Shown in pieces: positions 1 through 23,593 of a stretch of 64,000 nt of DNA (the stretch's first letter is position 1; every line of letters begins with the position of its first letter). Under the pieces are notes generated by a model, which searched no databases, was not told where the DNA came from, and saw only the letters and a list, made by a program, of their open reading frames with translations. The stretch spans positions 25,110,001 through 25,174,000 of the forward strand of contig OZ004612.1 of assembly GCA_963924565.1 (NCBI GenBank). Reading direction: 5' to 3'. Both the position numbers and the translations under genes were made by a program. The stretch comes from Ascidiella aspersa (Eukaryota).

Positions 1-606
1 TGGATTCGCCAGCACACCTTCTACACAAACCCAACCGCCACCCGATCGGTGCCTCGTACCATCTGGGTTATCAGCTACTCGGCCTTGGTCGGAATGGTCG
101 TCCTGCCGATTGGACAGGTGATTTTCCAGTGCCTGGCGCGCATCAACGCAACGCCGGTAGGCTGCGACTACTATCAACTGCCTGGATTTACGTTCTATTT
201 AACGCTTTTGGCACCGGTGCTGTTTATGCTTTTCGTGTTGGTACAGTTCATGCTGCTCGGCCTGGTGCTTTACCCCATTGCCAGTCACCTTCGCAAGAAT
301 CGGAGCGGCAGTAGCGGCAGCACGATACAAGATGTAATCGTTCGCCTGAGCATCTGCACCGGGATTTGCGTGGCCACCGACATTGGAGCCCTAATAGTTG
401 TTCTACATGGAATGCCGGAAGGACAATCTATGTCCTTCATGCCGCTCACGTTTAGCTTCAACGCGATCGCAAACGTCTTGTTTTTGTACCTGTCTTTTAC
501 GGACAAATTCGACCGGCTTGTTCCATTCAAAACGAGGATTCATTCAAATAATCCCAAAAACAAAGATTCCGAGAAAGGGCAGCAGACTAAGCAGTCGCAA
601 TTATAA
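1..606 (+). CDS. Orphan 7TM GPCR-like receptor, copy 1 (5' end outside the window)
   Basis: Open from base 1 (W-I-R-Q-H-T-F-Y...) to TAA at 604-606; nearly identical to the 3' two-thirds of ORF 2737-3717; C-tail type RIHSN...KQSQL. Confidence 0.85.
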   Translation, partial: WIRQHTFYTNPTATRSVPRTIWVISYSALVGMVVLPIGQVIFQCLARINATPVGCDYYQLPGFTFYLTLLAPVLFMLFVLVQFMLLGLVLYPIASHLRKNRSGSSGSTIQDVIVRLSICTGICVATDIGALIVVLHGMPEGQSMSFMPLTFSFNAIANVLFLYLSFTDKFDRLVPFKTRIHSNNPKNKDSEKGQQTKQSQL

Positions 607-2371
607 TAAATCGACCCGCGAAATAAAAGTAATGAAGTTAATTTTACTTTCGGACTGTGTAAATAAGTGTCACATCATTTGGATGTACATTATTGTAATG
701 ACTTGAGTCAACCGATATCTTTACTCCAGGAGCACTAATGTGATTGTTTTGCATTGGATTGAATTTACCTAAATATTTTTGCACAAATGACTTCATTTGA
801 GTAATTTTATCAAATAACTTAACTTGAAGTTGTAACTTCTAAATTATTTATGTTGTTTAAATTGTAACACATTTGTTAAACCGATTGTTTTTATTAAACA
901 CATAACTTGTCTATTTGAAATATTCCCTAGTTGTTAAACGCAAGTATATTTAAGTATGTTTTTTTTACAAGTATTTCTTTACGCAAGTATTTCAAGTATT
1001 TTTGTTTGTTTGCTTTGTTTTTGGTGTTTGTTGTGCAAAGTTGTCTTGAAATGTTTATGATTCAACATTTACATTAAGAAAAACCTTGGACTGGTACTTG
1101 ACTTGGACAGATAATGGCTTGGAATAGGATTGGATTTGTTGAAAATGACTTCACTTGGACTTAAGTCAAATTAAAATTTCTGATTTTTAAGATTGAAAAT
1201 GCGAGGTTTTATCTTTTTAGAGTGCACCCTGTGCGAATCTAGGATTTGTGTCTAACAATCTTGAACATTTACCATAAACAAAGTTAAGGCTCCGTCATAG
1301 GGTGACGTTGCAAAACAAGTCAACTATAACTTGTGTTTTCGTTTGAAGTTCTGAGTATTGTGTGTGTCACACCCAGTCTATTTGAATAAATTCAAGGAGA
1401 TGGGGGCTTAGTGTTCCTATGAAGCGCCATTACATTCACTTGCCTTTGCACTTGGGTTAAGAACCACTTGTTTCGATTGTAGCACCAGTATTCATTCAAC
1501 ATAGTGGTTCTCTTGATTCCAGAATCAAAAACATCAAAGTTACCAAAATTAATTGAAATAGTACAATGAATGTTAACCACTAATTTGCTTAACTAATAAA
1601 GTCTAAGTCAAGTCTAATTTAGTCATCACACGCAAAGTTTTTCTTGTCACAAATGCTTCAAGTTATGCTATTGGCAAAGAGTGACTAAATTGCACTTTAG
1701 TCTATATAAGATTACGACACTTAGAAGAAAAGCTGCTTCAGAAACAAACTAAAATAATATACTTTAACAAATACCTGTAACTCGTGCAAGCGTAATACAT
1801 AAAAGCAGCCCAACCGCATACTTGTAAACCATAACTGATGGGTCTTTAAGTGAAAATAAACGTGATTTGTTTTAACTGGTCGTGAATATACCTGATTTTG
1901 TTATAGCCAGAGGCAATGGCGCCCGTAGTTTATTTGTTGATTCGCCTACATTGCCCAGGTAAGGTTCAGTTAAGGCCTAGTTTTCTTTTCATGGAATGAA
2001 TGACCAACAAACTAACGAAATGAAATCTGCATATTTATTTACGTATCTGTTTATTTATTTAGTGATTTCGCGCAAGTATTTGAGGTCTGTATGCGGCCAT
2101 AGCAACGTTTATAGTTTCTTAAAAAAATTCGGAGATTTATGACATCTTCCGATGCCATTTTTTCTCTTAGGCTACTTCTCACTTTACGGGTTGGAATGGA
2201 GCAGTGAAGATTATGAAAGTCAATCTAATTAAACCCTCCAATTAACGAAATGGACTATGCCTATATGTGCCTATGCTATGCTACTCAGACAATGCGATGG
2301 ACATTGATTTCAATTGTTTAACGTTTATATTCCTGAAGGTCCCTAATTCTGTTAGAACGTGACTGATTGAC

Positions 2372-2447
2372 CCAACAAACAGGTGTTTAGGATTAAGTGC
2401 TCGTAGGAACTAACCGCGTTTGTCGTTTTTCAAGCAATGTGTTCACG
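2372..2447 (+). promoter_or_regulatory. Conserved upstream block shared by the receptor paralogs (putative cis-regulatory element)
   Basis: caacaaacagg(t/c)gttta..ttaagtgctcgtcg..aact.acc...aatg(t/c)gtt recurs at ~5499, ~10809, ~13893, ~18677, ~22250 (partial) and 48640-48719 (minus), although A- and B-type upstream regions otherwise diverge. Confidence 0.5.
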
Positions 2448-2736
2448 AATGTTCCGAGCCTGATCTAGACAACGTTTAGTCGTTTACTTTCCACCTACTG
2501 ATGTGGCAGCTATACTCCCTGAAAGCAAGAAAGTTTTTCAAGTTTTGTTTTGCAATATAGAAAACAGATTATCTTCATTTCGTACAGTGCACTTGAATAA
2601 CACTGTAAGAAATTTTGTAGGAAATAGTCAGTTGCACAGGTCCGAAGCCTTAAATTTTCACCCTGTGGACTGCCAAGAGTAATTTGAAACAGCCAACTCA
2701 AATTTAGTTGTTAAACGTTAAACAAGTCAAAACCCA

Positions 2737-3717
2737 ATGTCAACTTCCACCAGTAGTTTGGATGTGAGTACAGGGCCCGGAGCCTCGCCATCAAATGTTA
2801 CAGCACAACCTGGAGTCACCTTCGTTCCCTACGTGACTCGCCCGGCCGAGATATACATGCTGTTTTTTCTGCTGATCATCAGTCTCTACCTGACGGTGGC
2901 CGCGTCCTGGTACCAGTGGAAGCACGGCCAGGAATCGCTGAAGTGGACCAACCGTCTTTGCACCATCGCGCCCTCAACGCTGCTGCTTCAGTCATGCTTG
3001 TTTCTCATCGAGGTCTGCGGCACAAACCTGAGCGACGCGGTGTGCAGCTTCTACTTTATCGTCACCATTTTCCTGCTGAACTTCAACAAGTCCTTTGTCT
3101 ACTTGGTGCTATGGATTCGCCAGCACACCTTCTACACAAACCCAACCGCCACCCGATCGGTGCCTCGTACCATCTGGGTTATCAGCTACTCGGCCTTGGT
3201 CGGAATGGTCGTCCTGCCGATTGGACAGGTGATTTTCCAGTGCCTGGCGCGCATCAACGCAACGCCGGTAGGCCGCGACTACTATCAACTGTCTGGATTT
3301 ACGTTCTATTTAACGCTTTTGGCACCGGTGCTGTTTATGCTTTTCGTGTTGGTACAGTTCATGCTTCTCGGACTGGTGCTTTACCCCATTGCCAGTCACC
3401 TTCGCAAGAATCGTAGCGGCAGTAGCGGCAGCACGATACGAGATGTAATCGTTCGCCTGAGCATCTGCACCGGGATTTGCGTGGCCACCGACATTGGAGC
3501 CCTAATAGTTGTTCTACATGGAATGCCGGAAGGACAATCTATGTCCTTCATGCCGCTCACGTTTAGCTTCAACGCGATCGCAAACGTCTTGTTTTTGTAC
3601 CTGTCTTTTACGGACAAATTCGACCGGCTTGTTCCATTCAAAACGAGGATTCATTCAAATGATCCCAAAAACAAAGATTCCGAGAAAGGGCAGCAGACTA
3701 AGCAGTCGCAATTATAA
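2737..3717 (+). CDS. Orphan intronless 7TM GPCR-like receptor, copy 2 (326 aa; ECL2 Cys->Arg)
   Basis: Seven hydrophobic segments, Ser/Thr-rich N-terminus with NVT sequon, Cys at top of TM3 (DAVC), LWIRQ motif at TM3 end; PVGC of paralogs is PVGR here. Confidence 0.85.
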   Translation: MSTSTSSLDVSTGPGASPSNVTAQPGVTFVPYVTRPAEIYMLFFLLIISLYLTVAASWYQWKHGQESLKWTNRLCTIAPSTLLLQSCLFLIEVCGTNLSDAVCSFYFIVTIFLLNFNKSFVYLVLWIRQHTFYTNPTATRSVPRTIWVISYSALVGMVVLPIGQVIFQCLARINATPVGRDYYQLSGFTFYLTLLAPVLFMLFVLVQFMLLGLVLYPIASHLRKNRSGSSGSTIRDVIVRLSICTGICVATDIGALIVVLHGMPEGQSMSFMPLTFSFNAIANVLFLYLSFTDKFDRLVPFKTRIHSNDPKNKDSEKGQQTKQSQL

Positions 3718-5863
3718 TAAATCGACCCGCGAAATAAAAGTAATGAAGTTTATTTTACTTTCGGACTGTGTAAATAAGTGTCACATCATTTGGATGTACA
3801 TTATTGTAATGACTTGAGTCAACCGATATCTTTACTCCAGGAGCACTAATGTGATTGTTTTGCATTGGATTGAATTTACCTAAATATTTTTGCACAAATG
3901 ACTTGATTTGAGTAATTTTATCAAATAACTTAACTTGAAGTTGTAACTTCTAAATTATTTATGTTGTTTAAATTGAAACACATTTGTTAAACCGATTGTT
4001 TTTATTAAACACATAACTTGTATATTTGAAATATTCCCTAGTTGTTAAACGCAAGTATATTTAAGTATTTTTTTTTACAAGTATTTCTTTACGCAAGTAT
4101 TTCAAGTATTTTTTGTTTGTTTGCTTGCTAATAGCTTTGTTTTCGGTGTTTGTTGTGCAAAGTTGTCTTGAAATGTTTATGATTCAACATTTACATTAAG
4201 AAAAACCTTGGACTGGTACTTGACTTGGACAGATAATGGCTTGGAATAGGATTGGATTTGTTGAAAATAACTTCACTTGAACTTAAGTCAAATTAAAATT
4301 TCTGATTTTTAAGATTGAAAATGCGAGGTTTTATCTTTTTAGAGTGCACCCTGTGCGAATCTAGGATTTGTGTCTAACAATCTTGAACATTTACCATAAA
4401 CAAAGTTAAGGCTCCGTCATAGGGTGACGTTGCAAAACAAGTCAACTATAACTTGCTGTTTTCGTTTGAAGTTCTGAGTATTGTGTGTGTCACACCCAGT
4501 CTATTTGAATAAATTCAAGGAGATGGGGGCTTAGTGTTCCTATGAAGCGCCATTACATTCACTTGCCTTTGCACTTGGGTTAAGAACCACTTGTTTCGAT
4601 TGTAGCACCAGTATTCATTCAACATAGTGGTTCTCTTGATTCCAGAATCAAAAACACCAAAGATACCAAAATTAATTGAAATAGTACAATGAATGTTAAC
4701 CACTAATTTGCTTAACTAATAAAGTCTAAGTCAAGTCTAATTTAGTCATCACACGCAAAGTTTTTCTTGTCACAAATGCTTCAAGTTATGCTATTGGCAA
4801 AGAGTGACTAAATTGCACTTTAGTCTATATAAGATTACGACACTTAGAAGAAAAGCTGCTTCAGAAACAAACTAAAAGATTATACTTTAACAATATACCT
4901 GTAACTCGTGCAAGCGTAATACATAAAAGCAGCCCAACCGCATACTTGTAAACCATAACTGATGGGTCTTTACGTGAAACTGAACGTGATTTGTTTTAAC
5001 TGGTCGTGAATATACCTGATTTTGTTATAGCCAGAGGCAATGGCGCCCGTAGTTTATTTGTTGATTCGCCTACATTGCCCAGGTAAGGTTCAGTTAAGGC
5101 CCAGTTATTTTTTTTTCATGAAATGAATGACCAACCAACTAACGAAATGAAATCTGCATATTTATTTACGTATCTGTTTATTTATTTACTGATTTCGCGC
5201 AGGTATTTTAGGTCTGTATGCGGCCATAGCAACGTTTATAGTTTCTTAAAAAAATTCGGAGATTTATGACATCTTCCGATGCCATTTTTTCTCTTAGGCT
5301 ACTTCTCACTTTACAGATTGGAATGGAGCAGTGAAGACTATGAAACTCAATCTAATTAAACCCTCCAATTAACGAAATGGACTATGCCTATATGTGCCTA
5401 TGCTATGCTACTCAGACAATGCGATGGACAGTAAAGTCAATTGTTTAACGTTTATATACCTGAAGGTCCCTAATTCTGTTAGAACGTGACTAATTGACCC
5501 AACAAACAGGTGTTTAGGATTAAGTGCTCGTCGGAACTAACCGCGTTTGTCGTTTTTCAAGCAATGTGTTCACGAATGTTCCGAGCCTGATTTAGACAAC
5601 GTTTAGTCGTTTACTTTCCACCTACTGATGTGGCAGCTATACTCCCTGAAAGCAAGAAAGTTTTTCAAGTTTTGTTTTACAATATAGAAAACAGATTATC
5701 TTCATTTCGTACAGTGCGCTTGAATAACACTGTAAGAAATTTCGTAGGAAATAGTCAGTTGCACAGGTCCGAAACCTTTAATTTTCACCCTGTGGACTGC
5801 CAAGAGTAATTTGAAATAGCCAACTCAAATTTAGTTGTTAAACGTTAAACAAGTCAAAACCCA

Positions 5864-6826
5864 ATGTCAACTTCCACCAGTAGTTTGGATGTGAGTACAG
5901 GGCCCGGAGCCTCGCCATCAAATGTTACAGCACAACCTGGAGTCACCTTCGTTCCCTACGTGACTCGCCCGGCCGAGATATACATGCTGGTTTCTCTGCT
6001 GATAATCAGTCTCTACCTGACTATGGCCGCGTCCTGGTACCAGTGGAAGCACGGCAAGGAATCGCTGAAGTGGACCAATCGTCTTTGCACCATTGCGCCG
6101 GCAATGCTACTTCTCCAGTCCTGCTTGTTTCTCATCGAGGTCTGCGGCACAAACCTGAGCGACGCGGTGTGCAGCTTCTACTTTATCGTCACCATTTTCC
6201 TGCTGAACTTCAACAAGTCCTTTGTCTACCTGGTGCTATGGATTCGCCAGCACACTTTCTACACAAACCCGACCGACGCCAGACCGGTGCCTTGCACCAT
6301 TTGGGTTATCAGCTATTCGGCCTTGGTCGGAATGGTCGTCCTGCCGATTGGACAGGTGATTTTCCAGTGCCTGGCGCGCATCAACGCAACGCCGGTAGGC
6401 TGCGACTACTATCAACTGCCTGGATTTACGTTCTATTTAACGCTTTTGGCACCGGTACTGTTTATGCTTTTCGTGCTGGTACAGTTCATGCTGCTCGGCC
6501 TGGTGCTTTACCCCATTGCCAGTCACCTTTGCAAGAATCGTAGCGGCAGAAGCGGCAGCACGATCCAGGATGTAATCGTTCGCCTGAGCATCTGCACCGG
6601 GATTTGCGTGGCCACCGACATTGGAGCCCTAATAGTTGTTCTACATGGAATGCCGGAAGGACAATCTATGTCCTTCATGCCGCTCACGTTTAGCTTCAAC
6701 GCGATCGCGAACATCATGTTTTTGTACCTGTCTTTTGTGGACAAATTCGACCGACTGGTTCCTTTCAAAACGAAGATTGATCCAAACGATGCCAGAAACA
6801 AAACTGCCGACCAAGGCCAGGGGTAG
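5864..6826 (+). CDS. Orphan intronless 7TM GPCR-like receptor, copy 3 (320 aa)
   Basis: Intact ORF paralogous to copy 2; alternative C-tail KIDPNDARNKTADQGQG. Confidence 0.88.
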   Translation: MSTSTSSLDVSTGPGASPSNVTAQPGVTFVPYVTRPAEIYMLVSLLIISLYLTMAASWYQWKHGKESLKWTNRLCTIAPAMLLLQSCLFLIEVCGTNLSDAVCSFYFIVTIFLLNFNKSFVYLVLWIRQHTFYTNPTDARPVPCTIWVISYSALVGMVVLPIGQVIFQCLARINATPVGCDYYQLPGFTFYLTLLAPVLFMLFVLVQFMLLGLVLYPIASHLCKNRSGRSGSTIQDVIVRLSICTGICVATDIGALIVVLHGMPEGQSMSFMPLTFSFNAIANIMFLYLSFVDKFDRLVPFKTKIDPNDARNKTADQGQG

Positions 6827-7783
6827 CAGACTCAGAGTTCGAAAATATAACAAATCGACTCGCGAGTTATATTTCAACTTTCGGACTCTGTGACCACGTG
6901 TCACATTATTGGGATACATTGTTGTACAGGAATCTTGAGTCAACCAATATATATACTTAAGTGCACTAAAGTAATTGTTTTGCAATGGACTGACTTTACC
7001 TAAATATTTTGGCCAAAATGACTTGATTTGAGTAATTTTATCAACTAACTTAACTTGGAGTTGAGACTTTCATATTAATTTGTTGTTTAATTAAACAAAT
7101 TTTTAACCTTATTGTTTTAATTAAACACAATCAATTCTAAAATTTAAAATTTACCATAATTTTTAAGTGCAACTTTTTTGTTTTGCTTATTGTCTTGTTT
7201 TTGGTGTTTGTTATGCGAAGTTGTCTTAAGATATAATCAATTTACTAATTTTGATGGTTTAGCATATGTATTTAAAAGAGTTAGGACAAAAACTTGGACT
7301 GCTACTTGACTTGGATTAGTAATGACTAGAAATAGGGTTGGATTTGTTATTTATTGAAAATGACTTGACTGAGACTTCAATTAAAAATGTCTGCGGTTTC
7401 CAGCGTTTAAAAATGCGAGGTTTATCTTTTTAGAGTGCACCCTCTGCAAATCTAGAATTTGTGTCTAATTTAACCTTGAACATTTACCATAAACAACGTT
7501 AAAATTCTGTCATAAGGTGATGTTGAAAAACAATCACCTGTAACCTGTTTTTGTGGTTTCAAGTTGTGAGTATTGTGTGGAGCACACCCAGTTTATTCGA
7601 ATAATCTTAAGTAGATGACAGCCTAATGTTGCTAGGAAGCACCATTACGTTTTCTTGTCCCCGTTAAAGATCCACTACTTATAGAGTACCACGCGCATGG
7701 CAACTTTGAGACAAACACAAAAGTCATATTATAAGAATTGCGCCAAATGCAGACAATCAATCGGAGAGAACAGACGTTGGCAA

Positions 7784-9749
7784 CAGGGGACGTGGCGTTA
7801 TTTTGCACAATGTGCGCAAAAATGTAGACACCAAAATGTGAAAAAAATTTGTGCACATTTAGAACTGCCTTCAAAAATGTGCGCACTTTTTTTAACATTG
7901 AGCACACATTTTGAACTGCCTTCAAAAATGTGAGCACTTTTTTCGCAATGTTTAAATGCCTTTAAAATGTGCGCACATTTTAAGTTAGAGTTGTTTAGAG
8001 CAGGGCCGGCCAACTTCTCCGGTTGGCGGGCCAGATATGGAAAAGTGAAGTACTTGGCGGGCCGGATTAAGCACTGCCAAGGCGCATGCTTTGTCGCATA
8101 ACGGCGACTAATATTATACTCTTTAAACACGGCAACACTTTCATTGCACATCAAACATACTGCAATAAACTAAGTGCAATTATTAAACCGAAAATCAGTT
8201 TGTTTGGATGTTATGAGATAGATATTTCGCTACAAAACGCATCCTCAGTAGAATACTGATGATTAGGGCGATGACTTGACAAAAAAGTTAAATTTTTTTC
8301 AAAACTTACACGTTACCGGTAGGTCAAAACTAAGTCAAAAACAATAAAAAAGTTGTGGATATTGTGTGGAGCACACATTGATCGTTTACAAAATAAAATA
8401 AAAATCTACAAAATTTTATTAAAAAAAAGTTAGTTTGAGTTATATTCAACGACATTTTAACTGCATTACATCTTTAGTAGAGCAATACGATATACGCGAG
8501 CTTCCAGAATTAACCACCTGGGCCTAGTTTATCGCAATAGGTTCAGCTCAAACTTCGTTTTTGCATTATACAGTTGTTTATCTCTGATTTGAACAAATGT
8601 ATTTAAGAGTATTTGCTGTCTTTTTTCGCTGGACAACATTTTCTAAAATACCCCGTCGTTTGTTTTTCTTCGGCAATTTATAGTTATTTGACTTTTTAAA
8701 ATAACAAAAATATCAACTAAACATTTTTAATAATTTTGCATAAACCCGACAAAATAACTGATTTGTGTTCGATCGATAGTCAGTAAAACATCACAAATGT
8801 GTGGTATGACGACGCCAAGACACTAATGCTGTTGTTTAAATTATTATAAAATTTTAATTTTTTAAGTCAAAATTTTTCATCTTTTAGGTCTTATATTTTA
8901 AATATATAAATTTTAATTGTTGCCCTAATGATGATGGATCATTACCCTAAAAATAATTGCTCTAATGATGATGCTTTTAGTAGCAAAATATATTTATCTT
9001 ATAACATTCAAACATTCTTTGTCATTTGAGTACTCTATGCACGGATCTATATTGTAGCTTGAAAATAAATTGCAAAGCCGAAAAGGTCTTAATCAAGATG
9101 CTGTCGATCTACTTGACCTTTTTGGCTTTTCAATTCTTTGTCATTAATGTGCAACCAGAATAATTTGATTTTCACCATTCGGATTCAAGCAGATTTTTTT
9201 TTTGAAAGAAAGTTCTGATTTTTCCCGACTTGAGTGAAGAAGTACCTCGGCATCCAATCATTGTTAAACTAGCGCCACACCTTCCTACAAACTTACGTTT
9301 CTTAAGAAACCAATGGAAAAATATTTATTGTAAATTTTAAATATAATTTTAACCCAAAACAAAGAACTAAAGAATAACCAAGGATCACTATTTTTTGACG
9401 TAGTAAGCAAGTAGTGGGGGATTGTGGCAGAATGTGGCCGCGGGCCACAAATTCCACGATATCATGTAAGACCGGAAACTGTCTGCGCGCCGCTCAAAAT
9501 CCCGTCGCGGGCCCGACCCGGTCCGCGGGCCGTATGCTGCCCGCCCCTGGTTTCGAGTTTAGAATTTAGAGTTAGTGTTATTAGGGTTAGAGTTAGCTAA
9601 CTCTGCACTCTAAACTCTGTACTCTTGACTCTAACTCTAAAGTCTAACCCTTGCTAACTCTAACTCTAACCTAAATATTGCGCACATTTTTTGCACATTT
9701 TTTGGCGTGCACATTTTTGCGCACATTGTGCAAAAATGTTCGCATCCCC
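7784..9749. mobile_element. Non-autonomous repeat (tgtgcgcac-rich, with a ttaggg/ccctaa-like internal palindrome), interrupted by a nested hAT MITE
   Basis: Ends ttttgcacaatgtgcgcaaaaatg / catttttgcgcacattgtgcaaaa are inverted; a second copy lies at 27604-27922 in the opposite orientation. Confidence 0.65.
8001..9549. mobile_element. hAT-type non-autonomous DNA transposon nested in the 7784-9749 element
   Basis: Termini cagggccggc... / ...gcccgcccctg, gcgggcc subterminal motifs, 8-bp TSD gtttagag / gtttcgag (1 mismatch). Confidence 0.8.
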
Positions 9750-11149: not shown

Positions 11150-12124
11150 ATGGAAACTTCCACCAGCAGTTTAGAAGCGAGCACAGGGCTTGAAACCTCG
11201 CCATCGAATATTACAACGCCAGTCACCTTTGTTCCCTACGTGACTCGCCCGGCCGAAATCATAATGCTGGTTTGTCTGCTGATCCTTAGTCTCTACCTGA
11301 CGGTGGCCGCGTCCTGGTACCAGTGGAAGTATGGCCAGGAATCGCTGAAGTGGACCAACCGTCTTTGTACCATCGCGCCCTCAACGCTGCTGCTTCAGTC
11401 CTGCTTGTTTCTCATCGAGGTCTGCGGCACAAACCTGAGCGACGCGGTGTGCAGTTTCTACTTTATCGTCACCATTTTCCTGCTGAACTTCAACAAGTCC
11501 TTTGTCTACTTGGTGCTATGGATTCGCCAGAACACCTTCTACACAAACCCAACCGCCACCCGATCGGTGCCTCGTACCATCTGGGTTATCAGCTACTCGG
11601 CCTTGGTCGGAATGGTCGTCCTGCCGATTGGACAGGTGATTTTCCAGTGCCTGGCGCGCATCAACGCAACGCCGGTAGGCTGCGACTACTATCAACTGCC
11701 TGGATTTACGTTCTATTTAACGCTTTTGGCACCGGTACTGTTTATGCTTTTCGTGTTGGTACAGTTCATGCTGCTCGGCCTGGTGCTTTACCCCATTGCC
11801 AGTCACCTTTGCAAAAATCGGAGCGGCAGTAGCGGCAGCTCGATCCAGGATGTAATCGTTCGCCTGAGCATCTGCACCGGGATTTGCGTGGCCACCGACA
11901 TTGGAGCCCTAATAGTTGTTCTACATGGAATGCCGGAAGGACAATCTATGTCCTTCATGCCGCTCACGTTTAGCTTCAACGCTATCGCGAACGTCTTGTT
12001 TTTGTACCTGTCTTTTACGGACAAATTCGACCGGCTTGTTCCATTCAAAACGAGGATTCATTCAAATGATCCCCGAAACAAAGATTCCGAGAAAGGGCAG
12101 CAGACTAAGAAGTCGCAATTATAA
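11150..12124 (+). CDS. Orphan intronless 7TM GPCR-like receptor, copy 4 (324 aa)
   Basis: Intact ORF; distinct N-terminus METSTSSLEASTGLETSP and a different ('B-type') upstream region; core near-identical to copies 1/2/5. Confidence 0.88.
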   Translation: METSTSSLEASTGLETSPSNITTPVTFVPYVTRPAEIIMLVCLLILSLYLTVAASWYQWKYGQESLKWTNRLCTIAPSTLLLQSCLFLIEVCGTNLSDAVCSFYFIVTIFLLNFNKSFVYLVLWIRQNTFYTNPTATRSVPRTIWVISYSALVGMVVLPIGQVIFQCLARINATPVGCDYYQLPGFTFYLTLLAPVLFMLFVLVQFMLLGLVLYPIASHLCKNRSGSSGSSIQDVIVRLSICTGICVATDIGALIVVLHGMPEGQSMSFMPLTFSFNAIANVLFLYLSFTDKFDRLVPFKTRIHSNDPRNKDSEKGQQTKKSQL

Positions 12125-14257
12125 TAAATCGACCCGCGAAATAAAAGTAATGAAGTTAATTTTACTTTCGGACTGTGCAAATAAGTGACACATTATTTGG
12201 ATGTACATTATTGTAATGACTTGAGTCAACCGATATCTTTACTCCAGGAGCACTAATGTGATTGTTTTGCATTGGATTGAATTTACCTAAATATTTTTGC
12301 ACAAATGACTTGATTTGAGTAATTTTATCAAATAACTTAACTTGAAGTTGTAACTTCTAAATTATTTATGTTGTTTAAATTGAAACACATTTGTTAAACC
12401 GATTGTTTTTATTAAACACATAACTTGTATATTTGAAATATTCCCTAGTTGTTAAACGCAAGTATATTTAAGTATTTTTTTTTACAAGTATTTCTTTACG
12501 CAAGTATTTCAAGTATTTTTGTTTGTTTGCTTTGTTTTTGGTGTTTGTTGTGCAAAGTTGTCTTGAAATGTTTATGATTCAACATTTACATTAAGAAAAA
12601 CCTTGGACTGGTACTTGACTTGGACAGATAATGGCTTGGAATAGGATTGGATTTGTTGAAAATAACTTCACTTGAACTTAAGTCAAATTAAAATTTCTGA
12701 TTTTTAAGATTGAAAATGCGAGGTTTTATCTTTTTAGAGTGCACCCTGTGCGAATCTAGGATTTGTGTCTAACAATCTTGAACATTTACCATAAACAAAG
12801 TTAAGGCTCCGTCATAGGGTGACGTTGCAAAACAAGTCAACTATAACTTGCTGTTTTCGTTTGAAGTTCTGAGTATTGTGTGTGTCACACCCAGTCTATT
12901 TGAATAAATTCAAGGAGATGGGGGCTTAGTGTTCCTATGAAGCGCCATTACATTCACTTGCCTTTGCACTTGGGTTAAGAACCACTTGTTTCGATTGTAG
13001 CACCAGTATTCATTCAACATAGTGGTTCTCTTGATTCCAGAATCAAAAACATCAAAGTTACCAAAATGAATTGAAATAGTACAATGAATGTTAACCACTA
13101 ATTTGCTTAACTAATAAAGTCTAAGTCAAGTCTAATTTAGTCATCACACGCAAAGTTTTTCTTGTCACAAATGCTTCAAGTTATGCTATTGGCAAAGAGT
13201 GACTAAATTGCACTTTAGTCTATATAAGATTACGACACTTAGAAGAAAAGCTGCTTCAGAAACAAACTAAAAGATTATACTTTAACAATATACCTGTAAC
13301 TCGTGCAAGCGTAATACATAAAAGCAGCCCAACCGCATACTTGTAAACCATAACTGATGGGTCTTTACGTGAAACTGAACGTGATTTGTTTTAACTGGTC
13401 GTGAATATACCTGATTTTGTTATAGCCAGAGGCAATGGCGCCCGTAGTTTATTTGTTGATTCGCCTACATTGCCCAGGTAAGGTTCAGTTAAGGCCCAGT
13501 TATTTTTTTTCATGAAATGAATGACCAACCAACTAACGAAATGAAATCTGCATATTTATTTACGTATCTGTTTATTTATTTACTGATTTCGCGCAGGTAT
13601 TTTAGGTCTGTATGCGGCCATAGCAACGTTTATAGTTTCTTAAAAAAATTCGGAGATTTATGACATCTTCCGATGCCATTTTTTCTCTTAGGCTACTTCT
13701 CACTTTACAGGTTGGAATGGAGCAGTGAAGACTATGAAACTCAATCTAATTAAACCCTCCAATTAACGAAATGGACTATGCCTATATGTGCCTATGCTAT
13801 GCTACTCAGACAATGCGATGGACAGTAAAGTCAATTGTTTAACGTTTATATACCTGAAGGTCCCTAATTCTGTTAGAACGTGACTAATTGACCCAACAAA
13901 CAGGTGTTTAGGATTAAGTGCTCGTCGGAACTAACCGCGTTTGTCGTTTTTCAAGCAATGTGTTCACGAATGTTCCGAGCCTGATCTAGACAACGTTCAG
14001 TCGTTTACTTTCCACCTACTGATGTGGCAGCTATACTCCCTGAAAGCAATAAAGTTTTTCAAGTTTTGTTTTGCAATATAGAAAACAGATTATCTTCATT
14101 TCGTACAGTGCGCTTGAATAACACTGTAGGAAATTTCGTAGGAAATAGTCAGTTGCACAGGTCCGAAGCCTTTAATTTTCACCCTGTGGACTGCCAAGAG
14201 TAATTTGAAACAGCCAACTCAAATTTAGTTGTTAAACGTTAAACAAGTCAAAACCCA

Positions 14258-15220
14258 ATGTCAACTTCCACCAGTAGTTTGGATGTGAGTACAGGGCCCG
14301 GATCATCGCCATCAAATGTTACAGCACAACCTGGAGTCACCTTCGTTCCCTACGTGACTCGCCCGGCCGAGATATACATGCTGGTTTCTCTGCTGATAAT
14401 CAGTCTCTACCTGACTATGGCCGCGTCCTGGTACCAGTGGAAGCACGGCCAGGAATCGCTGAAGTGGACCAACCGTCTTTGCACCATCGCGCCCTCAACG
14501 CTGCTGCTTCAGGCCTGCTTGTTTCTCATCGAGGTCTGCGGCACAAACCTGAGCGACGCGGTGTGCAGCTTCTACTTTATCGTCACCATTTTCCTGCTGA
14601 ACTTCAACAAGTCCTTTGTCTACTTGGTGCTATGGATTCGCCAGCACACCTTCTACACAAACCCAACCGCCACCCGATCGGTGCCTCGTACCATCTGGGT
14701 TATCAGCTATTCGGCCTTGGTCGGAATGGTCGTCCTGCCGATTGGACAGGTGATTTTCCAGTGCCTGGCGCGCATCAACGCAACGCCGGTAGGCTGCGAC
14801 TACTATCAACTGCCTGGATTTACGTTCTATTTAACGCTTTTGGCACCGGTGCTGTTTATGCTTTTTGTGTTGGTACAGTTCATGCTGCTTGGACTGGTTC
14901 TTTACCCCATTGCCAGTCACCTTTGCAAGAATCGTAGCGGCAGTAGCGGCAGCACGATGCAAGATGTAATCGTTCGCCTGAGCATCTGCACCGGGATTTG
15001 CGTGGCCACCGACATTGGAGCCCTAATAGTTGTTCTACATGGAATGCCGGAAGGACAATCTATGTCCTTCATGCCGCTCACGTTTAGCTTCAACTCTATC
15101 GCAAACGTCTTGTTTTTGTACCTGTCTTTTGCGGACAAATTCGACCGGCTGGTTCCTTTTAAAACGAAGATTGATCCAAACGATGCCAGAAACAAAACTG
15201 CCGACCAAGGCCAGGGGTAG
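14258..15220 (+). CDS. Orphan intronless 7TM GPCR-like receptor, copy 5 (320 aa)
   Basis: Intact ORF; same N-terminal and C-terminal types as copy 3. Confidence 0.88.
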   Translation: MSTSTSSLDVSTGPGSSPSNVTAQPGVTFVPYVTRPAEIYMLVSLLIISLYLTMAASWYQWKHGQESLKWTNRLCTIAPSTLLLQACLFLIEVCGTNLSDAVCSFYFIVTIFLLNFNKSFVYLVLWIRQHTFYTNPTATRSVPRTIWVISYSALVGMVVLPIGQVIFQCLARINATPVGCDYYQLPGFTFYLTLLAPVLFMLFVLVQFMLLGLVLYPIASHLCKNRSGSSGSTMQDVIVRLSICTGICVATDIGALIVVLHGMPEGQSMSFMPLTFSFNSIANVLFLYLSFADKFDRLVPFKTKIDPNDARNKTADQGQG

Positions 15221-15315
15221 CAGACTCAGGGTTCGAAAATATAACAAATCGACTCGCGAGTCATATTTCAACGTTCGGACTCTATGAACAAGTGTCACAT
15301 CATTTGGATGTACAT

Positions 15316-16501
15316 TGTTGTAATGACTTTGAGTCAACCAATATCTATACTTAAGTTGAAGTTGTGATTTCTAAATTATTTATGTTGTTTAAATTGAAAC
15401 ACATTTGTGAAACCGATTGTTTTTACTAGTCACATAACTTGTATATTTGAAATATTCCCTAGTATTTCCCAAACCGCAAGTTTTTTTTGTTTTTTTTTGT
15501 TGTTGGGTTGCCAGATAGAAAAAATAAGAGCCAAAATTACTCTTAAAAAGGCCAAATCTACTACAAACTCCAACAAGCCTATGTTTTTCCTTAAATGAAT
15601 AAAAAATGCAATAAATGATCATGCTGGTACATTGAATTTCTTTTCTTGTGGCAAATTTTCTTAACAAAAAGGTGTGCAACCAACAAAAAGGTGTGCAACC
15701 ATTGCCTTATTGAATGCTAAGCAAAATCAAGCAGTAAACAAACTGGCAATTGGATCAAACTTTATGCAAGTGACGTGATCTGTTCCAAACTTGAAATTTT
15801 ACTTGTCCTATAATGCTAATCTAGTATTTAGTAAATCTAGTTTTTAGTAAATCTAGAAGACACCACTCAAAATCTATGTAACTCTATTGAGTTACGATTG
15901 GCCCTAATTGAAAATCCATCCAACTCGCCTGTACCATGTGCCAAAAAATCAATAGTTTTTTTTTAAACGACAATATTGTTTTCATTTTTTCTTTGTTACG
16001 CTTTAAATTGTTTCACCAGGGAATATTTGTTTATGGTATTTTTTTAGGGTTGTAAAAAGTCATTTTGAAATGACTTAAGTCCTATAGTCAAATCAATTGA
16101 AAAGTCCAAGTTTATTTTGCAAAAAAATAATAAGTCAAGTCCAAGTCATCATTTGCCGTAGTCAAGTTTCATTTAAGTCATTTTTACGTCAAGGCATCTT
16201 TAAGTCATGTCACTGATATAAAAATAAAACAATAAACTATTAAAATTGGTAAACTCGTCCGATTAGGGCTAGGCCTATGATCAACACCTGAACTAAAAAA
16301 AACTATATGCAGCAAGCAAAATTGTTTACCTGAAAAAATTACGACAAATAACTCAATTTTGTTTGAAAATATTTTGTGTAACACTTAACTTTATCTAAGA
16401 TATTTGACTAAATGACTTAAGTCAAGTCAAGTCATTTTAGTCACAGGACTTAAGTCAAGTCAAGTTATTTTAAAACAATGACTTAAGTGGACTTACAACA
16501 C
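15316..16501. mobile_element. Old TIR element with GACTT/AAGTC subterminal repeats in the receptor 3' flank
   Basis: Begins tgttgtaatgactt and ends ...acttacaacac after many aagtcaagtc repeats; related left ends follow copies 1-4 and 6. Confidence 0.5.
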
Positions 16502-16848
16502 GCATTACAACATTGCTATTTTTACTTTTATATCTTTATCAAGACTTTAAAAATGGTTTTCTATTGCATTTTACCGTCTGCCGTGCTTCCTCAAATAATG
16601 CGTTTTTTGGGGCAAAATATTGTTCGCTTAGGGTTGTACAAAATTGTATTTCGATACGCGATGCTCCGGGCAAAATTTACAACTATGCGCTACAAAACTA
16701 AATGAGTTCATTACTATGGTTCAGTATGCAAAACTGAGAAAATTGAAACATGCGAGGGCGTGTTTTTTGGTTGTTACGCCAAAGTTGACTTTAGCGTTGT
16801 CAACCTTATTGAGTTTTTCTTTTTCTTTTAATATGTAACGTTCTAGGG

Positions 16849-18229
16849 CAGGGGTGGGCAATTATTTTTAACCGCGGGCCACAAGAGAAACTTAAAATGT
16901 TGTCGCGGGCCGGGTCCAAAAAGAGGCTCTCAAATGCACGTAATATGACGTTATACTACGACGCTAAAAAATAAATAAGCTGACGAACTTGTTATTTCGT
17001 TAGGAGTTGTGCGCAAATGTGCAATTTACGTCAAATTTAACACAAAGGAAAAATGTGACTATAGGCTATTTGAGTGTTCCTTAACCTTTTTTACTTGGGG
17101 CGCACCTAGAGACATATGCAAACAGGGCGGCGCACCTTGCGAGCGAAGCGAGCGCGAATTTTTTTAGGTGTACCGGTATTTCTCTTAAATTGCCTGCATT
17201 TTTTTATTATATAGGTTTTATATAGTTGCATATCTTTAAAGGGACTCCAGCCTTTAAGACTATAAACCTTATTTTGTCCATTTAAGTCTTGTTCCGATTA
17301 ATTTTGGACTTATTTTGTGTTTAGGTCTTATTTAGACTATTTTAGATTTTATTCTGTCGTGTTTATTATTGCGAGTATGGCGTTATTATGTCGGTGGTCT
17401 TAGTACTATGGTATTATAGATTATCTTTTTTTTTTTAGGTATTGTTGCCTTGTAGGTCCTATTGCGTTTTCTACTTAAAAGGCTTGTGGAATCAATGAGC
17501 TAAGCTTGATAGGAAAGTAAAAAATATATGTTTTATATAATAGGATAATAGGACCTACATTATTTTTTCCTTTTGCTCGCGGCGTACCTGGCAGCCTTCT
17601 GCGCCGCGGCGCGCCGGTTAAGAAACGCTGGGCTATTTGTTTTAAAACGAAAATTTTAATTTAGACATAGAGGGCAACGTCAAGCATTGAGTACAGATAA
17701 AAAATATACATTGCTTGATATATACTTTGGTACAATGGCCATATTGCAAAGAAGGCATAAATCAGGAGAAATACACAACATGGCATTAATTAAATTAGGC
17801 TAACAAACGTGAATCTGTATGTTTCAGAGTTTAGAAAACGGCATGTATTTCGTCCATATTTTAAAGTCGGAATACATTCGAAAGCAGCGCAATATACTTA
17901 AATATATTAGGGCTAAGTTTGTTAAACTTTTGTTGAAGAGAGTGCCACAGTGCAGAGGACGCTTTTAATCTGTAAATATGGCCAAATAATTTGTGGAAGA
18001 TACGAAAAAGACAGAAAAGATTCGCGCAAAGCGCAAAAAAAAAATCATTTTAGTCTTTAAAACAGGCTTTAAATAGAGTTTGGATCCGTCCCTAGAAATA
18101 GTGTTAACGATACAACCAAACGTAGAAATTCCCCCTTGTTTTCTCTCGGCTTATGTATTTTAAGAAAACTAAGCCGCGGGCCGGATTAAATTGCCTGGCG
18201 GGCCGCGGGCCGTATGTTGCCCAGGTCTG
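16849..18229. mobile_element. hAT-type non-autonomous DNA transposon
   Basis: Termini caggggtgggcaa / ttgcccaggtctg, gcgggcc motifs; perfect 8-bp TSD ttctaggg. Confidence 0.88.
17072..17630. mobile_element. hAT-type MITE nested in 16849-18229
   Basis: Termini gagtgttccttaacc / ggttaagaaacgctg; perfect 8-bp TSD ggctattt. Confidence 0.82.
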
Positions 18230-19007
18230 TTCTAGGGTATATAATGTTGCTTTGGAGCACAAATCTTGGCTGCAGATTGGACAAATAGAAATGTTTTGAC
18301 GTTTCAAATTTAGATTAGAATAAAACTTAGCTCATTTTTGTTCGTCTAAATTAGATTATCATTATCATATTATTGTCTAGATTAGCCCCTATAAACTGTT
18401 AAATTGGCCTTTTCGAGGTTATCGCACTAAAGTGAAGATCCACTTGTTGGGATTGACCCAGATTAATTGTCGATTTAAAGCAGTGCCAGTATTGGTTTAT
18501 CAACCCGCACAATAAAGCGCGCAGACTTCACACAATTTTTTCGCAAGCATATATGCATAAATTATGCAATATCGCAACAGATTAATAATTAAGGTGTATG
18601 GATAAAATCCCACCATCATCCAATTAATGCCGGCTCCGTCACCAACGTAATGTAGATTGTAGAGGCCTAATTGGGTCCAACAAACAGGGGTTTGTGCTCG
18701 TCGATAACTGACCACCTTTGTCGGTGTTGGCTAATGCGTTTACGCTTGTTCTTAGCATTCGTGCGCACAGCTTTCTTCTCGCAGTAAATGGAGGCAGTCA
18801 TTTTTTCTGAAGTTCTTTTTTCATATGACAGACTGGACTGGCAACACAGCAAGTAGTTGAGCGATCAGTTACAAGCGCAAAGTTGCTTGGTTTTTGTGTG
18901 GTTAAAGAGATATAGTTTAAAACGAAGGTTTCCGTGTGACTTCAAGAAAAATTTTGATCAACAATTGACTTCAAGAAGATTTTGATCAACACTGGACATA
19001 TCAAGCG

Positions 19008-19986
19008 ACGGCGACTTCAACCAGCAGTGAAGATGCGAGCACATGGTTTGAAACCTTGCCATCAAATGTTACAGCACAACCTGCAGTCACCTTTGTGCCC
19101 TACGTGACTCGTACGGCTGAGATGATCATGCTGGTCCCTGTGCTGATCATCAGTCTCTACCTGACTGTGGCCGCGTCCTGGTACCAGTGGAAATACGGCC
19201 AGGAATCACTGAAGTGGACCAACCGTCTTTGCACTATCGCGCCCATTATGCTTCTCCTTCAGTCCTGCATGCTTCTGATCGAGGTCTACGGCAGAAACCT
19301 GAGCGACGCGGTGTGCAACTTCTACGCCATCGTTATTTTTTTCCTGCTTATCTTCAACAAGTCCTTCGTCTACCTGGTGCTCTGGTTGCGCCAACATATC
19401 TTCTACAAAACCCCGACCGCCGCCCGAACGGTGCCGCTCGCCATCTGGGTTATCAGCTACTCGGCATTGGTCAGAATAGTTGTCCTGCCGCTTGGACAGC
19501 TCGTCGTTGATGCCCTTAGCGTACGAAGGCACGCCGGTCGGATGTGTTAATGTCACCCGGTTCATAAAAAAAGAATTTAGGAGATCTATCCATACGGTGC
19601 TGTACATGCTCTTCGTGCTGGTACAGTTCCTGCTGCTCGGCCTGGTGCTTTACCCCATTGCCAGTCACCTTCGAAGAAACCGTAGCGGCAGCAGTGGAAG
19701 CACGATTCAGGATGTAATCGTTCGCCTGAGCATCTGCACCGGAATTTGCGTGGCTACCGACGTTGGCGCCTTATTCTTTATCCTATTTGGAATTCCGAAA
19801 GGGTCATCTTTGTCCTTCATTCCGCTCACCTTTAGCTTTAACGAAATCGCGAACATCTTGCTTTTGTACCTGTCTTTTACGGACAAATTCGACCGACTAG
19901 TTCCTTTTAACACGAGGATTAATTCAAATGATCCCAGAAACATAAAATCCGACCAAGGGGAGCAGACTGAGCAGTCGAAGATTTAA
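19008..19986 (+). pseudogene. 7TM receptor pseudogene, copy 6
   Basis: Start context tcaagcgACGgcg versus tcaagcgATGgaa in copy 4 (ATG->ACG at 19008); 2-bp deletion near 19526 (cgaaggcacg versus cgaagaggcacg in copy 7) splits the frame into ORFs 19056-19550 and 19480-19986. Confidence 0.85.
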
Positions 19987-20384
19987 TAAATCGACTAGCG
20001 AAATGAAAGTTATATTCATTTCCGAACAAAATAAGTGTCACGCTAGCAAACGTGCATTGTTGTAATGACTTTATTCAATAAATATTTTGAGTTAAGTGCA
20101 CTTAAACTGTTTTCAAATGGAATGTCTTGACTTAAGAGGGAAAAATACAGTGGGAAAAATTACTTGATTTGAGTCATTCTATCTAATGAATTAGCTTGGA
20201 GTTGTGAATTATATATTGATCTGTTGTTTAAATTGAAACACATGTTTAATCCTAATTGTTTTAATTCAAAACATAATTTTATATTTACCTCAATTTTTAA
20301 CGTAAAAGCTTGCTTGCTATTTGATGGGTTTTTGGTGTTCTTTATGTGTAATTTTCGTGAAACGTAATAAATTTACTATTATTT

Positions 20385-21675
20385 TTTGTGAGGGATCACG
20401 TACATCAGAGTTGGTAGGGTTAGCAATTTGCTAATTCTCCCCCTTGGTTTGGGATTATTATTGCCCCGTTTGTGTAGTGTTTTTACTTTTAAAAGCGACG
20501 GAAAAGAGTTGCGACAACTACTGTGCTTGTTTTCAGAGGGTGCTGTTTGGGGAATCTGAAATCAAAGAAAAAAACACTAAATATGTTTCATAAAATATGA
20601 ACCTGCTTTTCACTCCCCCAACGAGGGGGAGAGTTTATTAGCATCAGGTGGATATGTAAGAAGGACAAAAAGTAAGGATGTTGAAGCCCTATTTTATTTG
20701 AAAGCGTTCTCCTCATTCGAGGAAATGCATTTTCGGTATTTGATATATTGTGGCCGGTTATTCTTCACAGGCTGTGGGTCGCTTACGCATGTTATCTGAA
20801 AAAACACACCCTACAACGGTGTTTCCACAACTTAAAAATATGTACCAATGCGATAAGGTCATGAGAAGCGGGGTTTGAGGGGGTGCGATAAAAAAATGTG
20901 GGAGTGGAAATCAACAAAAGTTGTGGATAGGGATGAGGTGAAAATTTAATGAAGGTTTTTGATGTGGGTTAGGAGGGGTTGGATTTGGGTAAAATGTAAA
21001 ATAGTGGATATAATTTGTGTATACAGTAGGTAGATCAAATAACCTTTGTTTTTGCGGTTCAAGGGCCAAACCATGTTTCTAATTTGGCTAGGTATCAAAT
21101 AGTGGGTGTAGGGAATGGAGATGGGAAAGGGTAAAGGTCACGTCGTCGGCATAAGCCACGAGTTCGGGTGGGGTGCGAGCGGTGGCGGGGAAAGAAAAAT
21201 GGAATAGTTTAAATGTTTTTCAGGAGGGGTACGAGGGCGATCAGTTTGAAACTCAGCGGGTCGCCTTGTCCTACTCCTCTTGTGATCGCAACGAGGCCAG
21301 TAGGCAAACCGTTCAACAAAATGGCGGATGTGGCCATATCTTTGGTAGTATGGATGTAATTCAGCAAAGCCGAGGGGAAATTGCGGGTGAATGGCACGAG
21401 GGTAGGTTATGGAATCGAAGGCTTTTTTTAAATCGAGCGATAAAGTAGGAGGGGGTCACTCTTGATGCCGTGGTGGTAAAGGTCGAGGAATAGGGTGGCG
21501 GCAGTGGCAGTGGACGTGCCCTGTTGTTCATGTTGTAGGATATTGAAGAAGTGTTTTAAATGTGACTTCGTACGTTGATTTAAAATTTTTGTTGAGGATT
21601 TTGAGATAAAATTTGCATGATTGTTGGCAGCGGTTTCTTTTAATATAAGGGTAATGCCTACAAGTTTACTCATTT
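20385..21675 (-). mobile_element. Degenerate non-LTR retrotransposon (LINE, probably L1/Tx1-like) reverse-transcriptase fragment
   Basis: Minus-strand translations contain RT motifs LD..KAFDSI (~21410-21437), RGVGQGDPLS (~21255-21285) and ELVAYADDVT (~21136-21165), broken by frameshifts and stops; boundaries approximate. Confidence 0.85.
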
Positions 21676-22639
21676 CAAAACAGTAAATTAAAGCACTTAA
21701 GTAAACTTAAGTCATTACAACACCAAAAACAAAGCTAATTAAGAAACAATTACTAAAGGGTATACTTTATCAATTACCCTCATCGCGTGCAAGCGTAGCC
21801 TAATACAGAAAACTCGGCCAACCGTATAGGCCTACTGAAAATCCATAACTGGACAGATACAAGCACAAAATTGCAGCTAAAGCAATAAATTGAAGTATTT
21901 ACATACTTATTTACTGTTTTCGTACTTAAATTGAAGTAGCCTATCTGCATATTTATTTATTGTTTTTCGCACGAGCAAGTATGTGAAGCCTTTATGCGAC
22001 CACAGCAACATTAAAAAAACCCTTTGTGACAGGTTACAATGCCATTTCGTTTGCTTTCTAGTTTACGGTTTGGGATGGAGGTGTGAAGATTGTGAAACTC
22101 TGATTCAAACTAAGGTTTTATGTTAATGTATTGAAAAACATAGGTGTATGTTATGGTACTGCAAGAAAACGACGGACAGCGAAGTAAATAGTTAAACGTG
22201 CCAATGCCTGAAGGCAACTAATGCAGTTTGAAGGTGATTAATTAATGTGCTTAGGATTAAGTGCTCGTCGGAAACTGACCGCGTTTGTCGGTTTTCAACT
22301 AATGTGTTTACGTTTGTTCCGAGTCTGATCTAGACAACGTTCAGCCTTTTACCGTTCACCTACTGATGAGGCAGCATCATTGTCAGGTTGTCAGTGTATC
22401 ATTGACCTACGCCGTGAATGGAGCAAGTTTCTTAAGGTTTGTTTTGCAATACAGAAGCAAGATTATCCTCATTTCGTACAGCGCAATTCAAAGACACTGT
22501 GAGAAATTTTGAAGCTAATAGCAAGGTTGGTGGTAGTTGCACAGGTCCGAAGCCTCAAATTGTAACAGTGGACCGTCAGAAGCGATTTAAAACAGCCAAC
22601 TCCAATCTACTTGTGAGACGTTTGACAAGTCAAAACCCA

Positions 22640-23593
22640 ATGGCAACTTCCACCAGTAGTTTGGATGTGAGTACAGGACCTGGAGCGTCGCCATCGAATG
22701 TCACAACGCCAGAAACATTTGTGCCCTACGTGACTCGCCCGGCGGAGGTCATCATGCTGGTTCCTGTGCTGATTATCAGTATCTACCTGACGGTGGCTGC
22801 GCCCTGGTACCAGTGGAAGTACGGCCAGGAATCATTAAACTGGACCAACCGTCTTTGTACCATCGTACCGTCAACGCTGCTGCTTCAGACCTGCTTGTTT
22901 CTGATCGAGGTCTGCGGCAGAAACCTGAGCGACGCGGTGTGCAACTTCTACGCCATCGTTACTTTTTTCCTGCTCAACTTCAACAAGTCCGTCGTCTACC
23001 TGGTGCTCTGGTTCCGCCAGCACACCTTCTACACAAACCCAACCGCCGCCCGATCGGTGCCGCGAGTCATCTGGGTTATCAGCTACTCCGCCTTGGTCGG
23101 AATAGTCGTCCTGCCGCTTGGACAGATCTTCTTTGATGCCCTTAGCGTACGAAGAGGCACGCCGGTCGGATGTATAACCGTCACCCAATTTATGGGAACC
23201 AAAGTTAAAAGATCTATCCAGACGGTGCTGTACACGATCTTCGTGTTGAAACAGTTCCTGCTGCTCGGCTTGGTGCTTTACCCCATCATCAGCCACCTTC
23301 GCAAGAATCGTAGCGGCAGTAGCGGAAGCACGATCCAGGATGTAATCGTTCGCCTGAGCATCTGCACCGGAATTTGCGTGGCCACCGACGTTGGCGCCTT
23401 ATTCGTTATCCGATATGGAACTCCGAAAGGCGCATCAATGTCCTTCATGCCGCTCACCTTTAGCTTTAACGCGACCGTGAACATCTTGCTTTTGTACCTG
23501 TCTTTTGCGGACAAATTCGACCGACTAGTTCCTTTTAACAAGAGGATTAATTTAAATGATCCCAGAAACAAAAAATCTAAAGAAGTTCTTTAG
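22640..23593 (+). CDS. Orphan intronless 7TM GPCR-like receptor, copy 7 (317 aa)
   Basis: ATG at 22640 in the same aagtcaaaacccaATG context as copies 2/3/5; divergent TM4-ECL2-TM5; shortened C-tail ending KKSKEVL. Confidence 0.85.
   Translation: MATSTSSLDVSTGPGASPSNVTTPETFVPYVTRPAEVIMLVPVLIISIYLTVAAPWYQWKYGQESLNWTNRLCTIVPSTLLLQTCLFLIEVCGRNLSDAVCNFYAIVTFFLLNFNKSVVYLVLWFRQHTFYTNPTAARSVPRVIWVISYSALVGIVVLPLGQIFFDALSVRRGTPVGCITVTQFMGTKVKRSIQTVLYTIFVLKQFLLLGLVLYPIISHLRKNRSGSSGSTIQDVIVRLSICTGICVATDVGALFVIRYGTPKGASMSFMPLTFSFNATVNILLLYLSFADKFDRLVPFNKRINLNDPRNKKSKEVL

Follow-up and report, generated by a model that had tools for sequence, protein, structure and literature searches.

Tunicates respond to chemicals, yet every chemoreceptor family known from animals is absent from them (PMC7776563): the OR, V1R, V2R and TAAR families and the chemoreceptor families of nematodes and insects are all missing, and the chemoreceptors that tunicates themselves use have not been identified (PMC7776563, PMC2396169). 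A 2026 study of taurine-driven settlement named no receptor (PMC12922724). The closest described system is a large family of seven-transmembrane (7TM) proteins specific to tunicates, possibly chemosensory, which Johnson, Razy-Krajka and Stolfi reported in 2020 in one paragraph and a supplementary tree, with the protein of the Ciona gene KH.C3.516 printed in the supplement (PMC7397655). KH.C3.516 is the second-ranked enriched transcript of the axial columnar cells of the Ciona papilla and is expressed specifically there; it encodes a 7TM protein whose BLAST hits are confined to tunicates, it has tandem neighbours, and its product, when fused to GFP, is concentrated at the apical tips of the axial columnar cells, which are exposed (PMC7397655). 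Here we describe a 64,000-nucleotide stretch of the Ascidiella aspersa genome (G000:C6:25110001-25174000 in a 308.6-Mb assembly; hereafter the window), the letters of which include zero N, and the eight related single-exon 7TM genes and pseudogenes that it carries. Sequence similarity assigns the window copies to the orphan 7TM family, specific to tunicates, of which KH.C3.516 is the type. The best explanation of the locus overall, to which we give a rough probability of 0.7, is that it represents a young tandem expansion of this KH.C3.516-type family encoding predicted G-protein-coupled receptor (GPCR)-type receptors.

The link to the Ciona family was established through protein P0004 (UniProt H2XS12), which equals the printed KH.C3.516 protein over all 284 P0004 residues. 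The fourth window copy (c4), the reference copy in every search and in the structure modelling, matches P0004 with 42% identity over 270 residues by BLASTP (E 7e-64) and with an E-value of 3.1e-50 by phmmer. The two share the motifs TNRLC, VLWxRQ, PVGC, LLGLVL, VRLSxCT and SFxD...RLxPF, and they are also alike in having seven helices, tandem arrays and no named relatives beyond tunicates. They differ in subfamily and in the ascidian of origin, and papilla expression is known for KH.C3.516 alone. In an approximately unbiased (AU) test, a placement of KH.C3.516 as sister of the window clade plus its Phallusia relative was not rejected (p 0.24), and we make no orthology call. An earlier reading of the window from its letters (hereafter the original prediction) had proposed an uncharacterised chemosensory or environmental-ligand receptor family; the word uncharacterised has to be qualified, as the family was noted with a chemoreceptor proposal in 2020 (PMC7397655), and the interpretation thus coincides with a published hypothesis. 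A literature search by the NCBI LOC identifiers of the family found nothing. The locus is therefore no new kind of system, the family having been flagged in 2020, and what is added here is detail: the fold model, the topology, the motif set, a floor for the copy number, the inner/outer conservation pattern, the signal in extracellular loop 2 (ECL2) and the dating of the expansion.

Copies were located by a tblastn search of the window with c4 as the query, together with open reading frame (ORF) lists. This gave eight single-exon copies of about 320 codons each (Table 1), six of them intact (c1-c5 and c7) and two broken (c6 and c8). Copy c1 is cut by the start of the window only: it begins 369 nt earlier, and its ORF in the genome is intact (324 amino acids, G000:C6:25109632-25110603). 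The coding region of every intact copy is one open frame of 317-326 amino acids, as the predicted single-exon structure of about 320 residues implied. Seven tandem copies plus an inverted eighth had been claimed for positions 1-23593; the number and the orientation hold, and the eighth lies about 24 kb outside that interval. In c6, ACG replaces the ATG start codon of the other copies and the frame shifts within ECL2 near 19520-19528, while in c8 30 nt of transmembrane helix 6 (TM6) are perfectly duplicated in tandem and in frame (47503-47562), with a frameshift alongside. The ORF list contains no transposon ORF in the roughly 3.1-kb tandem unit.

Table 1. Copies of the 7TM gene and the repeated intergenic spacer, in window coordinates
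Feature	Position	Strand	Description
c1	1..606	+	residues 124-324 (3' two thirds); tblastn 97% identity to c4
c2	2737..3717	+	intact, 326 aa, single exon; ECL2 Cys replaced by Arg
c3	5864..6826	+	intact, 320 aa; C-terminal tail of the shorter type
c4	11150..12124	+	intact, 324 aa
c5	14258..15220	+	intact, 320 aa
c6	about 19008..19986	+	pseudogene; two tblastn pieces in different frames
c7	22640..23593	+	intact, 317 aa; divergent paralog, 75% identity to c4
c8	47296..48286	-	inverted pseudogene; ORF ends after 270 aa
Intergenic spacer of ~3.1-kb tandem unit	1012..2281	+	recurs at 4134-5408 and 12529-13802; 97-100% identity (repeat families D7-D11)

Further ORFs of 158-169 amino acids overlap TM2-TM5 of several copies in a second frame (2916-3416, 6043-6543, 11323-11832 and 14437-14937 on the plus strand, 47637-48113 on the minus strand). 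We treated these as by-products of composition, conserved only via the main frame, and not as genes. The remaining ORFs between 24 and 47 kb of the window gave no Pfam match.

The size of the family was assessed by sequence and profile searches of the same genome. A single-sequence search returned 89 matches. The profile search, which the original prediction had put forward as a check on copy number, revealed a large clustered family, pseudogenes included, with at least 125 loci at E ≤ 1e-5 on nine chromosome-scale contigs; this number is a floor, since all 125 candidates that were scored matched, out of 236 first-look candidates. In about 77 loci a single stop-free frame spans 250 or more of the 318 profile positions, the rest being partial or broken, and these near-full-length single frames indicate that the coding regions are intronless, as had been predicted. 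The largest array seen lies at C5:21.87-22.04 Mb and holds about 20 matches, several of them with stops. Another array at C3:31.04-31.10 Mb has seven matches, most of which span profile positions ~16-245 only (the first two thirds); its members could be truncated genes or members that bear introns.

In public data, 181 clusters (50% identity) match c4 at E ≤ 1e-3. All of the named relatives are ascidian (Ciona intestinalis, Phallusia mammillata, Clavelina lepadiformis and Styela clava) and represent three orders, in line with the earlier suggestion of a lineage-specific tunicate family. This taxon range rests on the named matches; most matches are nameless, and non-ascidian tunicates lie outside the coverage.

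Most of the protein features in the original prediction were recovered in the copies. Seven hydrophobic segments are present by hydropathy analysis of c4, as they are in the AlphaFold2 model described below, and the expected short glycosylated N-terminus has a putative NxS/T site at residue 20. The Cys pair that was thought to join TM3 and ECL2 corresponds to C101 (TM3) and C178 (ECL2), which are at least 90% conserved family-wide, and its reported loss in copy 2 reflects the replacement of the second Cys. At the end of TM3, where class A receptors have DRY, the motif LW(I/L/F)RQ was seen across c1-c8, with LWIRQ in c1-c5, LWFRQ in c7 and LWLRQ in c6 and c8. Family-wide, TM3 carries W-x-R-Q at its cytoplasmic end (conserved at 100% for W, 94% for R and 97% for Q), or Y-x-V-L-W-x-R-Q-R-x-F-Y in its long form. 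Other family motifs are Y-P where TM5 ends, R-L-x-x-C-T-x-V-C-V-x-T-D in TM6 (with no W-x-P) and (N/D)-x3-N ... S-F-x-D-(W/Y)-(R/K)-x-R-L-x-P in TM7 and helix 8. No NPxxY is present in TM7, again as predicted: position 282, which follows N281, is V/L/N/I family-wide and Pro is never common there.

The segments predicted to lie inside hold 18 Lys and Arg residues and the outer ones 2, a distribution that together with the N-terminal NxS/T site places the N-terminus outside. This orientation excludes the inverted topology of insect OR/GR-type channels and PAQR proteins. A retinal-binding (type I) rhodopsin is likewise excluded, because no copy has a Lys in TM7 (residues 269-290).

An AlphaFold2 model of c4 was built from a 69-sequence alignment and reached a predicted local distance difference test score (pLDDT) of 88.8 and a predicted TM-score (pTM) of 0.84. 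It comprises seven long helices, a hairpin of two strands in ECL2 (171-174, 177-180) and, after TM7, a short helix 8. By Foldseek against the PDB, all 50 of the 50 matches listed were GPCRs, nearly all of them class A, with E-values from 6e-5 and TM-scores of only 0.40-0.55. The predicted GPCR-type 7TM fold and topology are supported.

To compare the family with class A receptors at the level of sequence, we aligned its profile with those of eight class A receptors encoded in this genome after trimming gappy columns. These profile-profile alignments scored 31-40 (E 1.5e-3 to 6e-5, 183-262 columns), and reversed controls scored 16-19. The trimmed alignment pairs C101 with C3.25 and R126 with R3.50, and in TM7 it sets the family N-x3-N against the class A N-x3-N-P within one residue in either direction. 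UniProt assigns the automatic label 'GPCR family 1 profile domain' to H2XS12 and several Clavelina members, and 'family 3' to one member. Class A GPCRs (PF00001/PROSITE family 1 profile) and the window family are alike in the predicted N-out 7TM arrangement, in the disulfide between TM3 and ECL2, in the beta-hairpin of ECL2, in having Arg at the place of R3.50, in the TM7 N-x3-N and in a helix 8 that is amphipathic and has a conserved Phe, and the best Foldseek matches are class A; they are unlike in that the family has no PF00001 match at E ≤ 1 and keeps only the Arg of DRY. On the basis of alignments and the model, we read the family as a probable, very divergent GPCR-type receptor that is nearest the rhodopsin class and fails the formal class A tests.

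Three further comparisons were discarded. An untrimmed hhalign run against class A (probability 99%, E 1e-22) proved to be an artefact of gappy columns, as shuffled and reversed controls came close to the real score (130-139 vs 158), some of them over aligned columns numbering down to 8. P215 was rejected as the counterpart of class A P5.50, the alignment setting it at the cytoplasmic end of TM5. The nearest named clusters in the ESM Atlas were fungal DUF7703 at 0.87, which is too weak for use.

The evolutionary history of the copies was examined with a maximum-likelihood tree and pairwise substitution rates. The same subfamily has a second cluster 0.75 Mb upstream (G000:C6:24331473-24368847), which contains at least four intact copies with 70-76% identity to c4, together with fragments. 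Ten copies from contig C6 (c1, five intact window copies and four copies of the second cluster) form a clade with 100% support, and this clade is sister to a Phallusia protein plus a Logan protein (97% support), so that both arrays on C6 arose after the split from the Phallusia lineage. Copy c7 does not group with c1-c5 but with the second cluster (C6:24.33-24.37 Mb), implying that sequence has moved or been exchanged between the arrays. Pairwise ratios of nonsynonymous to synonymous substitution rates (dN/dS) among intact copies are 0.19-0.53, indicating purifying selection, and dS is as low as 0.047 (c1 vs c4), so some duplications are very recent. With the nearly identical spacers and the broken c6 and c8, this value confirms the earlier observation of recent duplicates beside pseudogenes. 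Copy c2 looks chimeric: its 5' end resembles c3 and c5 (first 100 nt 100% identical to c3 vs 77% to c4) and its 3' end resembles c1 and c4 (in the last block from position 901, of about 80 nt, 78 matches to c4 vs 48 to c3), a pattern that fits unequal crossover between alternating c1/c4 and c3/c5 gene types. The window is a young lineage-specific tandem expansion of one subfamily that evolves in birth-and-death mode.

Conservation across 65 members is unevenly distributed over the protein. The cytoplasmic half, defined as the inner helix halves, the inner loops and helix 8, averages 1.58 bits vs 0.98 bits for the outer half (Mann-Whitney p 1e-11), and 23 of the 30 most conserved positions fall in it; one more is the start Met, and the extracellular exceptions are the cysteine pair and a neighbouring Gly, Q205, D250 and N277. 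Such an inner-conserved, outer-variable pattern is expected for receptors that share one intracellular partner and diverge in ligand. ECL2 has a dN/dS of 1.0-1.2, and other regions with enough substitutions have values of 0.1-0.6.

From these features we propose that the copies encode cell-surface receptors of the GPCR type, which we consider highly probable, with a glycosylated N-terminus predicted outside, seven helices, the C-terminus inside and a TM3-ECL2 disulfide that would lie under the ECL2 beta-hairpin. A ligand would bind at the variable outer half (ECL2 and the outer helix halves), and the signal would then pass to the conserved cytoplasmic face, to which TM3 contributes YxVLWxRQ at its end, TM5 YP, likewise at its end, TM6 RLxxCT at its start and helix 8 SFxD(W/Y)(R/K)xRLxP. 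This face may engage a common transducer, most plausibly a heterotrimeric G protein, a coupling that we infer. That the ligands come from the environment, which would make the receptors chemosensory, is a tentative proposal that we place somewhat short of even odds.

Several results weigh against the receptor proposal. A structure search independent of Foldseek (a wide VIA search) gave a flat list (Z 14-16.3) in which yeast Ste2, microbial rhodopsins, class A receptors and TMEM87A are mixed, and the fold alone therefore shows just a generic 7TM bundle. No Pfam family was found at E ≤ 1 in the window copies and 69 aligned relatives, nor in nine distant members (78 scanned); a genome-wide PF00001 (7tm_1) search matched none of the family loci, and neither the protein nor the family profile matched the sequence of any solved chain at E ≤ 10. 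The class A signatures N1.50, D2.50, the D/E of DRY, CWxP and NPxxY are absent, and W4.50 is also missing. The ECL2 dN/dS near 1 could reflect a relaxed loop as well as ligand-driven diversification, and gene conversion elsewhere in the gene may exaggerate the contrast. The window copies have no RNA support for transcription: RNA-seq run X8 of the same species gave 0 reads on the 4.8 kb spanning c4 and c5, which, in a 6% sample, carries no weight either way. The reads of runs X1 and X2 fall evenly on genes and on spacers, and these runs are therefore genomic DNA; X4 is low-depth and of undetermined kind.

Among other explanations, the one that survives best accepts GPCR-type receptors and assigns them endogenous signals (neuropeptides, transmitters or hormones) in place of environmental chemicals. 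Johnson et al. raised it for KH.C3.516 because the axial columnar cells adjoin sensory neurons (PMC7397655), and Ciona has many lineage-specific neuropeptides with divergent receptors (PMC6475428). At least 125 loci with young tandem duplicates, many pseudogenes and species-specific clades would, however, be unusual for receptors of endogenous ligands, and the tips at which the KH.C3.516 fusion is located face the sea water (PMC7397655); we consider this explanation unlikely. Immune, allorecognition or microbe-sensing receptors of blood cells or epithelia would also show birth-and-death evolution and a fast extracellular loop, which are typical of immune receptor families, and Ciona expressed sequence tags of the neighbouring ascidian-specific LDLa-GPCR expansion come mainly from blood cells (PMC2396169). 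Expression gives this idea no support, the sole studied member being expressed in the larval papilla (PMC7397655), and we regard an immune role as quite improbable.

A seven-helix protein that is not a receptor, such as a transporter, a TMEM87-like trafficking factor or a rhodopsin-like protein, would account for the failure of every GPCR Pfam model and for the scores of microbial rhodopsins (Z 16.0, root-mean-square deviation 3.6, 211 residues) and TMEM87A (Z 15.7), which equal those of class A. This explanation is more improbable still: the family lacks a TM7 lysine for retinal, a GOLD domain and a long N-terminal region, and its TM3-ECL2 Cys pair, ECL2 hairpin and TM3-end Arg are GPCR hallmarks, as the Foldseek matches listed also indicate. 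A decaying or selfishly amplified repeat without organismal function, to which the two broken copies among eight and the missing ECL2 cysteine of c2 might point, is disfavoured and scarcely credible given the dN/dS of 0.19-0.53 in every intact pair, the invariant family-wide residues, the orthologs in three ascidian orders and the transposon-free 3.1-kb unit.

The family can be compared with known chemoreceptor repertoires. Vertebrate OR, TAS2R and V1R families and nematode serpentine receptors are, like the family described here, intronless or nearly so, about 300-350 amino acids long and clustered; they undergo birth-and-death evolution, include many pseudogenes, form lineage-specific clades and combine variable outer pockets with conserved inner faces. 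Pfam models of the vertebrate OR, TAS2R and V1R families and of the nematode Sr families gave no match at E ≤ 1 in 69 members, and the likeness is an analogy in mode of evolution for which no link of ancestry is claimed. One ESM Atlas cluster auto-named 'Serpentine receptor class gamma' is chordate and without a Pfam family. The statement in the original prediction that ascidians lack vertebrate-type olfactory receptors agrees with the literature (PMC7776563, PMC2396169), and a 7TM family of over 100 genes that is confined to tunicates and has GPCR hallmarks, a fast outer loop and a conserved inner face fits this gap. It is possible, though more doubtful than an environmental ligand as such, that the family is the long-sought chemoreceptor repertoire of tunicates, OR-like and with an independent origin in a very divergent rhodopsin-type receptor, once the chordate OR, V1R, V2R and TAAR families had been lost. 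If so, young species-specific arrays such as that in the window may tune settlement or feeding cues, and settlement cues are of practical interest for biofouling and invasive ascidians. The motif set could seed a hidden Markov model of the family, for which Pfam has none.

A different expansion is represented at the far end of the window. The LDLRR-GPCRs of Ciona (Kamesh et al. 2008, PMC2396169) resemble the family described here in being ascidian-specific, largely intronless GPCRs, and are unlike it in carrying Pfam 7tm_1 and LDLa modules, neither of which occurs in the window family. A gene of the LDLRR-GPCR type lies at 60533-63254 on the minus strand as two adjoining ORFs without visible leucine-rich repeats (LRRs), one of 182 amino acids with three LDLa modules and one of 704 amino acids with LDLa modules and Pfam 7tm_1. 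The genome-wide PF00001 search returned dozens of uninterrupted frames of 700-1900 amino acids in which 7tm_1 starts far in, and this suggests that LDLa-type GPCRs have undergone a very large intronless expansion here, exceeding the 15 reported for Ciona.

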